A stretch of 64,000 bases of DNA from Macrostomum lignano (Eukaryota): NCBI GenBank assembly GCA_002269645.1, contig NIVC01003856.1:1-64000 (forward strand), written 5' to 3'. This document shows positions 47,401 to 53,400 of this stretch, one piece after another (position 1 is the stretch's first letter; every line of letters starts with the position of its first letter). The position numbers and the translations under genes are program-made. Under the pieces are notes generated by a model, which saw only the letters and a program-made list of their open reading frames with translations, had not been told where the DNA came from and searched no databases.

Positions 47401-50400
47401 ACCCTCCCAGATCCCCAGTTGCTATGGCTGCCACCCTCCCAGATCCCCAGTTGCTATGGCTGCCACCCTCCCAGATCCCCAGTTGCTAGGCAGCCACCCT
47501 CCAAGCTCAGTTGCTATGGCTGCCACCCTCCAAGCTCCTCAGTTGCCATTGTCAAAGCCACACTGACTCAGCTCCCCAGTTGCCATTGTCAAAGCCACAC
47601 TGACTCAGCTCCCCAGTTGCCATTGTCAAAGCCACACTGACTCAGCTCCCCAGTTGCCATTGTCAAAGCCACACTGACTCAGCTCCCCAGTTGCCATTGT
47701 CAAAGCCACACTGACTCAGCTCCCCAGTTGCCATTGTCAAAGCCACACTGACTCAGCTCCCCAGTTGCCAGTGTCAAAGCCACACTGACTCAGCTCCCCA
47801 GTTGCCATTGTCAAAGCCACACTGACTCAGCTCCCCAGTTGCCATTGTCAAAGCCCCACTGACTCAGCTCCCCAGTTGCCAGTGTCAAAGCCCCACTGTC
47901 TCAGCTCCCCAGTTGCCATTGTCAAAGCCCCACTGACTCAGCTCCCCAGTTGCCATTGTCAAAGCCCCACTGACTCAGCTCCCCAGTTGCCAGTGTCAAA
48001 GCCCCACTGACTCAGCTCATTAGCGGTAAATAGAAAGCGGCGCCCCGATCCGGCAGAGCTGCTGGCGTCTCACCAGCTGCGCAGGAAGAGCAGCCTGGCC
48101 GCAGTGTCGGCTGCGTCACTTGTCGGCAGTGACGATGGTAATGATGAGGGCGGCTGGCCGGGCCGCTTGTTGCATGGCTGGCTGGGCAATACCACTCTGG
48201 CTGCTTTCAGTAGTAGGTTAAATAAATACCATTTATTTTCAGCTTGTTCGAACCGTAATTATGTAATTATGTAATTAATGTATAATTATGTAATTTTTCA
48301 GTAACTCCTGATGAGGCCTTGCCTGCCAGTTGGCATGACTGATTCATGGGGCACTTGGGGGCATCGAAGAGGCGGGGCTCGCAAACCTGTCAGTCAGTCT
48401 GTTTTCAATGTCCCTATTGAATAGGTGTTAATTAGGGAATTGGAAGCTCTCTGGTTAATTACCTGCGCGCATGGGGGCTGCAATCAGTGATTTGTAGCGA
48501 GATATGCGGGACAGGGGCTGGCAAATTTATTATGCACAATTTTCATTAATTAAACTGGGCATCCGGTCCTGCTGTCTTCTTACTCCTATCCAACAGTTTT
48601 CAATTTTATTAATCTCCAATGCAGCAGAGAAAAAATTGAAACGAAAATAGAGCCAGAAATTTTTTATTGCATTTGTATTTGCAAGTGCGGGCCATTGCAG
48701 ACTGCACACACCGGTGGAGTGGCGAGCACAGCAGTCACAATAAAAGCAGACAAAAGCAGCGCAGCCGTGTCGTCCCCGGCCCGCCCCGGCAACAAATATT
48801 GCTGTTGTTGCTTGTTTGAACAAATTTGAAGCAGCAAAATTGCAAAATGCAGCGCCCTCCGCCCGCATGCTGTACAGGGAGCGAAAGGGGCTTGCGGCGG
48901 AGTTGGGACAAGTCTTTTTATATTGCATTTCCGCCTCACCTGGGCGGGCTTCCGCTGTCTATATTTGTGGTTGCGGAATTATTGGCATGGGATGGGGCGG
49001 CTTCTACTAGTAATTACAGAATGGCGGGGCAAGCCTGAAAACACTTGGTTAAAGAGCATTTCTCTCTGATCGATTCTTAGTGCAGATTTTGCTGAAATTC
49101 ATCTCTGTGGCGGTTGCTAGGCAACGATATGCGGCCGAGCTGTGGAAACGACAGATTGAGCGGCTGCGGAGATGGCGGAGGATGCGGAGGCTGCGGCGGG
49201 GGTGGCGGCAGCGAGGGCGGTGCCCGCAGTATCCGGGCTTTGTTGTCGTGCCGCATCCAACTCTGCACTGTGCTCAGTGGCACTTTGAAGTGCCGCTCCG
49301 CCGCCGATGCGCCGTGCTGCTCAGCGAACTCGATAACGGCCAGTTTAATCTCGGAGCTGTAGAACGACCGCGGCCGCCTGTTGTAGGCGACGCCTTTGCG
49401 GGTGATGATGCGCACCGGCTCCGGCGTTGCCTGTGGATCAAACGGGCGCGGCCCGCGGCGCTGCTGAGGCTGGTGCTGCAGCTGATGCTGCGGATGGTGC
49501 TGCGGCTGGCGTTGCAGCTGGTGCTGCAGCTGGTGCTGCAGCTGATGCTGCGGCTGATGTTGCGGCTGGTGCTGCGGCTGGTGTTGCGGCTGGTGCTGCG
49601 GCTGGTGTTGCGGCTGGTGTTGCGGCTGGTGCTGCGGCTGGTGTTGCAGCTGGTTCTGCGACTGGTGCTGATTAAATTGCGTTGCTGCGCCAGCAGATTC
49701 AGTGCCACCCTTCGGCCGGCCGCGGAGTCTGGCGGCTTCGCCATCTCCATTGCTGCTGTCGTTTGTGTTGCCATGGCTGCCGCCTAATCCGAATATGCCG
49801 CCTCCGCTACTGCTGCCGCCGCTGAGGGTCGCGTAGAGGGTGGGGATGATGAGCTGCGGGTTGAGGGCGGCCAGGCTGCGCAGCAGCTCCGCTCCGGGGT
49901 CCTCAGATTTCGTTGGCAGCGACTGTGCCGGAAATCCCGGCAGAGTAGGAAAGAGCGGAGGCGGTAGCGGATGAGGAGCGGAGGCCGGCGATGGGTCACG
50001 GCGCGGTCGTTTCTCGTAGCTCGAGCTTGTTTTTGTGCGGACTGCTCCTGCTGCTGTCTGCGGGCGCGAGTTGGAGTGCTAGAGTCATTAAAAGGCATCT
50101 AAGGTCCACCCTCCCAGCTCCCAGTTGTTGGGCAGCCACCCTCCCAGATACCAGTTGCTGGGCTGCCGCCTATGGATGCCTATCTCATAGACAAACCATA
50201 CCTGTACTAGTGCCACCTGAGGCTCGCATACTGACTTGTGGAATTGATGGATCCTTGATTTCTCTAATGCTTAAGCGCCGCAAAGAACTTGAGCGGGTTA
50301 TTTTTGTGCGAACTCTTCAAACTGTAATCAAAAGTGTCGCAGCGAGTTTTCACCGCAGCCTCTTGTCTTTAGAGGCAGATTCATCGAAACTTATCGAACT

Positions 50401-53400
50401 TGCCGCGAGGCCCGAGTTCCAAGTTCGGTACAGTTTTTCCCTTTTTTACTCGCCGGGACATCAAAAAAGTTTTCCAGGTGGATTTCTGTTGCTATTCCCG
50501 AAACTTCTCCTTTGTGCTTCATTAGGAATTCTTGTTTGCAGCGCCGCTCTTTGAGGCCGCAATTGGCGATTGCCAATTTTCCTGGTAATTGCTGGCATAT
50601 TTAATAAGCGGTGGCTTCTTGTCTGCTTTACTAATTTCTTCTGGATTTAGCTTTGCTGCTATGCAAGATGCGAATTATCCCGGCAATTCTGTTTCCCTGG
50701 TTCGAACATTGGTTCTGAAGTACCAGTGCAAGTTGGGCTGTCACGTGATCTAAATCCACTATACTGTTATTAAGTTGCACGCAAATGCGGCTGCAAATGC
50801 ATTTGCTCTGTTATGCATGCTTTATCTACATATTTATATACTGCGCCACCTCGGCTGCAGAATTATTTACTTAATTATCTATACATGGATTCCGCTATGT
50901 GAGGCATATAGAGCTATATATTGTATGTGGCACAGTATCCGCTGGAGAGCTTTTTCAATTTAACTTATTATAAACTGTTGAAAGTGCAGGATCGCCTCCA
51001 GCGATGCAGAATGGAAATTTCTGTATTGGCCTTCGCTCAGTGTGCAGAATGCAATGATTATATATGTTTCTATCTGTAGCTGACTGAATGCTCCCCAAGG
51101 CAGCTATTGATAAAGCAAATAAGCCCCCCCCCCCTGTTTTCCTGCTCTAGAAATTTAGTTGGCCTGCAATCCCCGCTGTTTCATTCCCTCTCCTGCTCTC
51201 TTTGTCCGGGCCTGTCTGCTTGTTCGGTGTTTCAATTTTTAATTTTTCCCCGACTTGTTCCGCTTCTTTTGCATATTGTAATCAAGTTTCGAATAAAAAC
51301 TGCTGGGTAAGGGATTAGAGAGGAGACAGCTAGAGGGAGGTAGAATGAGGATCTCTGCTGTGCGCGCTTCTTAATTCTCCTGCTTTGGCTATATCAGTCA
51401 GCGGGGATTCGTGCCCCCCCCCGCTACTCCTCAGCGCTGCTTGTATCTGGCTGCGTTTGGCTACATTCAGCGCCTAGTATCCACATTACAGTCGGATATT
51501 CTCTGTGTGTGTGTGTGTGTGTGTTAGCGACGAAAAGGCCGGCCACGCAATGCCTCGTCACGCGCATTTCGTGAAAATTATTATGCACACGAGGACAAGA
51601 AAAGGAGGATTGAAAAAATAAGGGAGAAAGGGGGAGAGAAGAAGGGAGAGCAGTTGGGCTGCAGTGGGATTACTGTGTAACACAGGCTGGGGGAACTGCG
51701 CACATCGGGAGAGTCCCTGGCCCGGGATGGCCGGGCTCCCAAAGCCTTCGCAGCCCCACTCGCCCGGCCTGGGACACGCATCAGGCGTGTTCGAGAGAGT
51801 AGCAGTTCAAAAACACACATAATCAGTCATGACTGCGTTTAATCTACTTCAACACTGCGCATCCCTGCCCCGTGTACAATGCCTGGGGAGCGAATATCCC
51901 CTCCCCTTCCCCATCTCCCAAAGTTAGAGGGAGGCAGAGGTGAATGAAGACATCTCGGTTCACCATAACCTATGCAGCCCCAGCACAGTCTGTATTTGCT
52001 GAATAGTGGGCAACGACATCACGCGTTGTCCTAAAGGTGTTAATGAGTCTCACCTACCTTTGTGTCCGCCAGCTGCTGCTGATGCTGCAGAATGCGCTTC
52101 GGGCAGGCGGACTTCCTGCTCCGCTTGCCGTGGCAGTGCAGCTGCTGATGGCTCATGCTTGACCTTGAAGGCTTCGCTGCTGCAGATTGAATTGCAATTT
52201 TAGTCAAAGACTGAGAAAGTCTTTATAAATAATCCAATGCGAGGATAGGAAGATTTTCTGGACAGTTTGCCCAGCTGGGTGCGCTATTAATGCGAGCGGA
52301 GGCTGGGGATGGCGGGCTGAGAAGTAGGACGGGAGGGAGAGCGCCTTCTCGGCCGGCCTGTAAGCAATGCCTTCAATAGTTGGCTTTATATTTTTATATC
52401 CAACAAGCGATTTTTCTCATAAACCCTGAATTGGATGGCGTCTCTCGTAGGGGGAGGGGGACGAAATGCAGTACGGCTGGGAGGGCGGGTAAGTATATTT
52501 AAATGGAAGGGGAGGGGCGGCTGTCTTAGTTATAAGGCCGCGTTCCTTTCGTCTGTCCTGTGCCCCTGCTATACTGATATAACTCATATATTGCTACCTG
52601 GTATGTTCTGTGTCAACTTTATTTCACGTGTAGTGCGCAGCCGCCCAACCTCGCCTCCCCACTCTCTCCTCTCCCCCACCCCTCCGGACCTCCGCAACCT
52701 CCGCCTTCATTCGTCTAAACTGTAAATATGCTGGGCCTACCGATCTTGTTGTTATGGTTACTGCTCCCTTCTTCTTTTTAACTAAGCCTTGCTTCGCCGT
52801 CCCAAAGATCGCTGGATTCGCTTTGGCTGTTCAAATCACACTCGATGCGTCAGGCCTAAAGCTGGTATCGTCTCTTCACAAGAAATTACGCTGCTTTTAC
52901 AGTATGGTTGCGTGCGGCTCTGCTTCTCTCGATAGGTGTGCACGGCAGCGACTGCTGTTCCCCTCCACCTGCCGCTCCCCTGTGCATTATTGTTTCCCAT
53001 TAGATAGCAGAGGCTGAGTCATATCTTGCGTTTATTTTTTCTACCCTCATAGTTGAGCACACAAGCAGGCTGCATGAATAAGCCTAGTCTGAGACCAGTT
53101 ATAGCCCAATAATAATCCTGGGACTAAAATTAAACAGGCCTGTATACAGATGCTGAATGAGGAGGCGAGAGTGCGAGTTGATGTCGCTGCCAGCTGCTCT
53201 GGGAGTTTTGGAATGGAGAGAGGAAAATAGAGAAATGAACGAGTGTTGGCTGGCCTGAACACATATAAGAGGTTATTATTTATAAGTTGCCTACAGAGTC
53301 ACTGCTATTCGGTTGCTAGGATACAAATGTGATATATATGCTTTATAGGCTGTACTGGCCTGTCTGCTTTTCAATGCTTTTTTGCTGAAAAGGGGGGGGG

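Follow-up and report, generated by a model that had tools for sequence, protein, structure and literature searches.

The pairing of two helix-turn-helix (HTH) domains, BrkDBD and HTH_Tnp_Tc5, characterizes Passer-type pogo transposases and POGK (PMC7386202). A second system of interest is the repressor Brinker (Brk), whose DNA-binding domain (DBD) is >80% similar among insects and which was described as hexapod-specific, intronless and absent even from crustaceans (bioRxiv 10.1101/2025.02.07.637038). Here, we analyzed a 64,000-nt stretch of the flatworm Macrostomum lignano genome (assembly GCA_002269645.1, contig NIVC01003856.1, positions 1 to 64,000 of the forward strand; hereafter the window), in which a preliminary description had proposed a hidden gene for a Brinker-like repressor, nested antisense inside a DOCK intron. 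Host proteins with a transposase-derived HTH are a known kind, and this locus appears to provide a further candidate. The explanation that we favor, though tentatively, is a young Macrostomum-restricted gene, or gene candidate, around a pogo-derived HTH.

In this explanation, an intron of a DOCK6/7/8-type gene would harbor the candidate on its opposite strand, and the candidate's main exon (50057-49077) would give a largely disordered protein of ~330-359 aa with no folded module other than a single pogo-transposase/Brinker-type HTH. This HTH would most likely have been captured from the N-terminus of a Passer-like pogo transposase or from a related multi-HTH family, in a capture that did not include the Tc5 HTH or the DDE catalytic domain. 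The start codon could come from the ATG of an upstream exon (52156, with a TATA box at 52227) or from the 3'-terminal AUG of a spliced leader (SL) joined at 50058/50057. The HTH would bind DNA, aided by an AT-hook-like motif (RGRPK), and a PLNLS motif would recruit CtBP, making the product a small transcriptional repressor that is Brinker-analogous in architecture and independent in origin.

The helix-turn-helix domain and its relatives

A single HTH of the BrkDBD/HTH_28/pogo N-terminal type (49227-49379, minus strand) was recognized by phmmer, a family profile and AlphaFold2 (AF2). An exhaustive phmmer search with the C-terminal 129 aa against 1.84 billion representative proteins retrieved 131 proteins at E<=1e-3. 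Most of them had several tandem copies of the ~50-aa HTH, and such multi-HTH array proteins yielded the highest summed scores. The single-domain relatives most similar to the query (P0124 and P0027, ~51% identity) contained this HTH followed by HTH_Tnp_Tc5. Additional Tc5-bearing relatives were P0049 and P0066, the latter also having a strong BrkDBD match. We aligned the query with the domains of 30 phmmer relatives (alignment A1, 31 members) and found that near-invariant A, G, A and W positions were all retained in the query. When the A1 profile was compared with PDB, the top match was the Brinker DBD (2GLO, E=2.4e-5), followed by Dan (E=0.057). At E<=0.01, members of A1 matched BrkDBD (11/31, best 1.9e-14), HTH_28 (13/31) and HTH_23 (12/31), and these mixed matches place the domain on the border between BrkDBD and HTH_28. 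AF2 with A1 predicted a three-helix bundle (helices 13-26, 28-35 and 39-56) with a mean predicted local distance difference test (pLDDT) score of 84.2. The top Foldseek matches were psq/CENP-B_N HTHs and homeodomains, none of them at E<=1e-3, and HTH families were not discriminated by this comparison.

At the level of the individual sequence, the product scored 11.9 bits (E=0.22) with Pfam BrkDBD (PF09607), below the cut-off of 23.4 and tied with HTH_Tnp_IS630. The 57-aa domain alone had HTH_Tnp_IS630 as its sole Pfam match (16.8 bits), and its best match in a PDB sequence search was 2ELH, the psq-type HTH of Drosophila Dan (E=0.69). Based on these comparisons, we consider the domain to be an intact HTH of the BrkDBD/HTH_28 group, whose relationship can be detected only transitively and whose nearest relatives are pogo-type N-terminal HTHs. 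The BrkDBD-type HTH of the preliminary description is thus supported at the profile level, as part of a BrkDBD/HTH_28/CENP-B_N group, but not by the score of the sequence alone.

The candidate shares with Passer-type pogo transposases and POGK the HTH pattern R..Y....KL.V.E.A..HG...A.R.F.V...TV..W (PMC7386202). However, it has only the first of their HTHs, lacks the Tc5 HTH, DDE domain, terminal inverted repeats (TIRs) and KRAB, and its HTH is flanked by low-complexity Q/H- and P-rich sequence. Multi-HTH arrays, such as the oyster 'HTH CENPB-type domain-containing protein' A0A8W8HXK3 and the fish ZNF135-like XP_062395903.1 (4 BrkDBD), have the same domain family, but their tandem copies number 4-10, frequently alongside zinc fingers, whereas the candidate carries one. 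Pipsqueak/CENP-B_N HTHs (Dan 2ELH, LCoR and CENP-B) were closest by Foldseek and second-best by sequence profile; these matches were weak (E of 0.06 or worse), suggesting only a generic homeodomain-like three-helix similarity.

Other transposon parts were searched for in the surroundings of the HTH. There was no Pfam match to HTH_Tnp_Tc5 or DDE_1 in the product or in any minus-strand frame of 49230-47350, and tblastn of the 131 relatives, including the Tc5-bearing ones, against the window gave matches only at 49.1-49.4 kb (one copy). In the 46-56 kb region, a search for TIRs found only 16-21-nt inverted pairs at chance level. These results agree with the previous statement that no CENP-B/Tc5 HTH or DDE domain follows the HTH, and the TIRs or DDE remnant at the flanks that would indicate an ordinary transposon fragment were not found in these regions. 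A complete or decayed transposon with recognizable parts was rejected, as no Tc5, DDE or TIR was found nearby. One further copy is known, at the A0A1I8IVX4 locus discussed below; it is syntenic and likewise antisense in a DOCK paralog. Two origins had been offered for the HTH: a domesticated pogo-derived DBD is now favored, because the relatives of ~51% identity carry HTH_Tnp_Tc5, whereas a Brinker-like factor by orthology is not supported.

An open antisense frame in a DOCK intron

The main coding exon (49077-50057, minus strand) contains 326 codons and a TAA stop. Its frame is stop-free from stops at ~50081 down to the TAA at 49079-49077, and the acceptor cccgcag|ACA (50058/50057) is placed 8 codons past the last upstream stop. 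In the list of open reading frames (ORFs) of the window, only the last 112 aa appear (49077-49415, GTG start), because the 215 codons further upstream hold no ATG, GTG or TTG, and there is no in-frame ATG ahead of the HTH. The 981-nt exon was therefore correctly described as open throughout and as shortened in the ORF track for want of an upstream start codon. It includes a coding tandem repeat (49462-49670, minus strand) with a 12-nt unit (17.4 copies, 85% matches) that is translated as (QPQH)n/(QLQH)n over ~70 residues.

GC content at the three codon positions (GC1/2/3) was coding-like in the C-terminal third of the exon (.67/.52/.73). A codon-usage log-odds model was trained on the window's own genes, and the six frames were compared. 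The candidate frame ranked first of six in the upstream exon 1 (0.32), the C-terminal part (0.35) and the HTH (0.43), and was marginally best in the N-terminal part of the main exon (0.20); the DOCK exons among the training sequences scored 0.6-0.86. We also considered this region as a plus-strand DOCK exon and rejected it, since the plus-strand ORF had worse codon scores and the splice sites were GT-AG on the minus strand.

The plus strand of the window at 34-63 kb contains a DOCK-C-type gene. A DOCK-C2 domain was found at 38036-38400 and DHR-2 lobe A at 58405-59307, and the region 46662-47000 aligned to human DOCK6 residues 1101-1197 (E=5.7e-13). In addition, A0A1I8HAE2, an M. lignano 'DOCKER domain-containing protein', was 97-98% identical to 58753-59121, 59652-60134 and 62214-62639. 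A DOCK6/7/8-type host gene is thus confirmed. The minus-strand ORF sits between the host exon with the DOCK6 match (46662-47327, GC3 0.83) and the next coding-like host exon (54658-54975, donor G|GTGCGT near 54975). In the latter no domain match was found, and its DOCK assignment is by position and composition only. Since the ORF is antisense between two DOCK exons, its previously proposed nesting in a DOCK intron is correct, if no small unrecognized DOCK exon intervenes.

Downstream of the ORF, at 47345-48018 (plus strand), we observed minisatellites whose units, CAGATCCCCAGTTGCTATGGCTGCCACCCTCC and a relative, are 32 and 37 nt long. A closely related 30-nt unit is present in two copies at 50106-50167 (plus strand), where it precedes the exon-2 acceptor by ~50 nt. 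The main exon is thus bracketed by one repeat family in direct orientation, which could mark a mobile unit or be a common M. lignano satellite.

The start codon and transcript ends

A candidate coding exon 1 (52058-52156, minus strand) consists of an ATG and 32 further codons, and its 33 aa are basic and resemble a nuclear localization signal. It ends in phase 0 with the donor AAG|GTAGGT (52058/52057) and is separated from the main exon by a putative 2000-nt GT...AG intron (50058-52057, minus strand) with canonical in-phase sites, which would be an outron if exon 2 were SL trans-spliced. Joining exon 1 (33 aa) to the main exon (326 aa) gives a product of 359 aa, so that the in-phase ATG exon and the size of the product were both as previously described. 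A candidate TATA box (TATAAA, 52222-52227, minus strand) is located 71 nt 5' of the ATG, and the first canonical AATAAA, a candidate poly(A) signal (48663-48668, minus strand), lies 408 nt past the stop; both were recognized from sequence only. Between TATAAA and the ATG at 52156 there is no other ATG, and TATAAA itself includes an in-frame stop (TAA, 52225-52223). An alternative acceptor, tttctcag|TCT, is located upstream at 52211/52210 (minus strand).

In M. lignano, 30-39% of genes are trans-spliced to CGGTCTCTTACTGCGAAGACTCAATTTATTGCATG, an SL that ends in ATG, and the reported trans-splice acceptor motif is [T/C]TNCAG (PMC8629364, PMC12582326). According to Cheng et al. 2006, as cited in PMC12582326, all flatworm SLs end in ATG, which is usable as an initiator. 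The acceptor CCGCAG|ACA of the main exon is a near-match to the motif, and an SL joined there reads ...TTGCATG|ACA GCA..., in frame. Two models of the start codon fit the sequence, the ATG at 52156 in the upstream exon and an SL-terminal AUG, both of them in frame.

Short motifs and predicted function

Four features had been described in the product besides the HTH, namely RGRP, the 12-nt (QPQH)n repeat, a proline-rich tail and PLNLS, and all of them, as well as the HTH, were located where described. RLRGRPKGG (49704-49730, minus strand) includes an AT-hook-like core, RGRPK, identified by sequence match; RGRP[RK] appeared in 0.2% of protein shuffles, and Pfam AT_hook had no match in the product. 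A proline-rich tract of 19 aa (49164-49220, minus strand) precedes PLNLS (residues 332-336; 49149-49163, minus strand), which is also present in A0A1I8IVX4. PLNLS matches validated CtBP-binding motifs, having been validated in ZNF750, EGL-13, ZEB and Hairless, and was correctly regarded as a known variant of the CtBP motif; motifs of this type appeared in 0.4% of protein shuffles. AF2 in single-sequence mode was uninformative for the whole exon (mean pLDDT 50), and most of the protein is predicted to be disordered. Considering the HTH together with the short motifs, a CtBP-recruiting DNA-binding repressor would be the most coherent mechanism, with the repressor function suggested only by one 5-residue motif.

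A second copy in A0A1I8IVX4

We tried additional searches with other queries. The full 359-aa product gave one junk match, as low-complexity words swamped the search, and a word-indexed search with an 84-aa HTH query gave no match. Neither outcome is evidence of absence, because the index missed A0A1I8IVX4, which the exhaustive phmmer search retrieved. This 780-aa UniProt entry from M. lignano is named 'Homeobox domain-containing protein' and has no start and no stop. On the window (58881-46635), it corresponds to a minus-strand model of nine segments, and the shared segments are 91-100% identical. Most of A0A1I8IVX4 is antisense translation of DOCK exons (96-100% identity). Antisense translation of GC3-rich DOCK exons is a classic shadow ORF, which makes the model as a whole doubtful; A0A1I8IVX4 is probably a shadow-ORF mis-annotation whose name relies on half an HTH.

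A0A1I8IVX4 carries exon 1 and the junction ADTK|TAAG exactly as predicted; of exon 2, it includes the N-terminal part, the second half of the HTH and PLNLS. In the shared nested parts, it differs from the window by substitutions and by in-frame indels of 2 and 6 aa only. Sequence comparison thus shows a syntenic second copy, in which the same junction was used by a gene finder or a transcript, and we regard A0A1I8IVX4 as a syntenic paralog or allele of the window copy. The gene previously called hidden is not fully so, as this paralog is already in UniProt.

A 44-codon segment at 54107-54238 (minus strand), which is an exon in the A0A1I8IVX4 model, is bordered by GT-AG sites, and its codon-usage score clearly exceeded those of the other five frames. 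It had no domain match. This segment might belong to the same minus-strand transcript as an upstream exon.

Alternative explanations

Several observations weigh against a functional gene. A rival explanation is a non-functional relic, i.e., a pogo-type or HTH-array fragment in a DOCK intron whose frame is open merely because of GC-richness and a stop-free 12-nt microsatellite, the splice sites, TATA box and motifs being coincidental and A0A1I8IVX4 an ab initio 'shadow' prediction. We consider such a relic a real possibility, if a somewhat doubtful one. The chance of an open frame was estimated by first-order Markov simulations, using either the exon's own GC-rich composition or that of the whole intron. 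A fully open frame of 327 codons arose in 2.5% of the own-composition simulations and in 0/300 with intron-wide composition, and ORF statistics are thus suggestive rather than compelling. Other frames and the plus strand also carry ORFs of 166-235 aa across the repeat. The N-terminal third of the main exon (130 residues) has flat GC across codon positions, and its edge in codon usage is marginal. In addition, the HTH by itself is under Pfam thresholds, and the AT-hook and CtBP motifs are just 4-5 residues long and were chosen post hoc.

The sole close phmmer relative of the C-terminal half among the 1.84 billion representative proteins was A0A1I8IVX4 (91% over the shared stretch), and no ortholog of this half was found in that set outside M. 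lignano. Four parts are missing from A0A1I8IVX4, itself a poor model as most of its 780 aa are antisense to DOCK exons: the AT-hook-like motif, the glycine-rich stretch, the first half of the HTH and the polyQH tract. After ...NRHR, its model continues by splicing past the window's stop codon. Where this model needs a GT donor, the window has CACAGAG|ATGAAT (AG|AT) at 49104 (minus strand), and the frame ends 8 codons further on. Having AG|AT in place of the GT donor, the two copies may differ in their C-termini, and they may not encode the same protein. Moreover, A0A1I8IVX4 comes from an older assembly and may be either evidence-based or ab initio; it does not prove transcription, and an ab initio junction would not be independent evidence that splicing occurs. 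Residue divergence between the window and A0A1I8IVX4 was ~5-9% in the nested exons vs 0-4% in DOCK-overlapping parts, which is compatible with weak or no constraint and with neutral drift of a relic.

On the other hand, several features are not readily accounted for by a relic. The HTH is intact at every conserved position and has a confidently predicted fold, whereas no other transposon part (Tc5, DDE or TIR) remains nearby. The acceptor follows closely after the last stop; upstream of it are a TATA box and an ATG exon that is in phase and ends in a strong donor. Codon usage ranks the candidate frame first in exon 1, in the HTH and in the C-terminal part, and the product contains two functional-looking short motifs, each rare by chance. 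If the locus is nonetheless a relic, it is a warning for annotation, as A0A1I8IVX4, named a 'Homeobox domain-containing protein', is largely an antisense shadow of DOCK exons.

An unlikely explanation is that the HTH region is one segment of a longer multi-exon minus-strand transcript overlapping DOCK exons, as modeled in A0A1I8IVX4. Its exons would be 58881-58340, 58200-58117, 54947-54672, 54238-54107, 52210-52058, 50057-... and 48201-48070 (minus strand), and such a transcript could represent a natural antisense RNA to DOCK, perhaps with a regulatory role. Every junction of A0A1I8IVX4 falls on a minus-strand GT-AG site distinct from DOCK exon boundaries, the frame is open upstream of the ATG at 52156 up to the acceptor at 52211, and the exon-3-like segment at 54238-54107 had the top codon-usage score mentioned above. 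However, the DOCK-overlapping parts are typical antisense shadow ORFs of GC3-rich exons and have no domain matches, and both a start and a stop are missing from the model. The donor that it uses after NRHR is AG|AT in the window, where the frame stops at the TAA at 49077, and the window offers no canonical acceptor at the point where the model skips the polyQH tract together with half of the HTH.

Relation to Brinker

We compared the candidate with Drosophila Brk. Both have a single HTH in a largely disordered protein with Q/H-rich tracts, and both contain a motif of the PxDLS class, which in the candidate is a putative CtBP-binding motif. The Brinker DBD structure (2GLO) topped the PDB matches of the candidate's family profile. 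Direct similarity was not detected, however: phmmer of the domain against PDB did not retrieve 2GLO even at E<=10. Identity to Brk over profile-aligned blocks was ~23%, and the insert between helices 1 and 2 of Brk is absent from the candidate. The CtBP motif of Brk is PMDLS(LG), whereas that of the candidate would be PLNLS. The Groucho motif FKPY had no match in the product, nor did WRPW or eh1-like motifs. The DBD is C-terminal in the candidate and N-terminal in Brk. Unlike the intronless brk, the candidate requires splicing or an SL, and its host is a flatworm, whereas Brk is restricted to hexapods. Brk genes have pMad/Medea/Schnurri silencer elements upstream; the pMad silencer element GRCGNCNNNNNGTCT had 0 matches in the 64 kb. 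Searches of the literature and of supplements retrieved nothing on BrkDBD or Brinker in Macrostomum. The likeness to Brinker is one of architecture and possible mode of action, not of family membership.

A more specific form of the favored explanation would be an independent, flatworm-specific domestication of a pogo HTH into a CtBP-recruiting Brinker-like repressor, antisense in a DOCK intron and initiated at the SL AUG, with a Brinker architecture arising convergently outside hexapods. The SL AUG would supply the initiator methionine, as the main exon lacks its own ATG. Taken as a whole, we consider this combination quite improbable. A true Brinker ortholog, acting as a BMP-pathway repressor outside hexapods, is extremely improbable despite the best PDB match of the family profile, the Q/H-rich tract and the CtBP-type motif, given that 2GLO was missed by the domain search, that identity to Brk is ~23% vs the ~51% seen with pogo-like proteins, that the helix 1-2 insert, FKPY and the pMad silencer element are all lacking and the DBD is C-terminal, and that Brk is reported as an intronless gene of hexapods, missing in crustaceans.

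If the favored gene candidate is expressed and functional, it would add to the cases in which a host transcription factor has acquired a transposase DBD alone and not the catalytic domain. This case would be located in a regenerating flatworm model with transgenesis and RNAi, and the architecture parallel to Brinker would support a repeated origin of Brinker-like repressors from pogo-type HTHs. The locus would, in addition, offer a clear test of translation starting at a spliced-leader AUG.

Other features of the window

Rfam detected no RNA family in 46-55.5 kb, and no SL RNA gene was found in the window. The DOCK introns contain long micro- and minisatellite arrays (38400-39150, 39490-40000, 41441-43318, 43900-44350 and 61306-62184), which yield spurious ORFs of 150-625 aa in several frames (SIYLSIYL..., DRQTDRQT...). 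ORF length by itself is therefore weak evidence for a gene in this genome. Also in the DOCK gene region, two adjoining ORFs at 36430-37226 (minus strand) resemble a frameshifted mariner-type transposase (...PYSPDLAP...). Upstream of DOCK, three intronless alpha-tubulin paralogs are present within 8 kb, at 23965-25440 (minus strand), 26122-27489 (plus strand) and 30015-31445 (minus strand).

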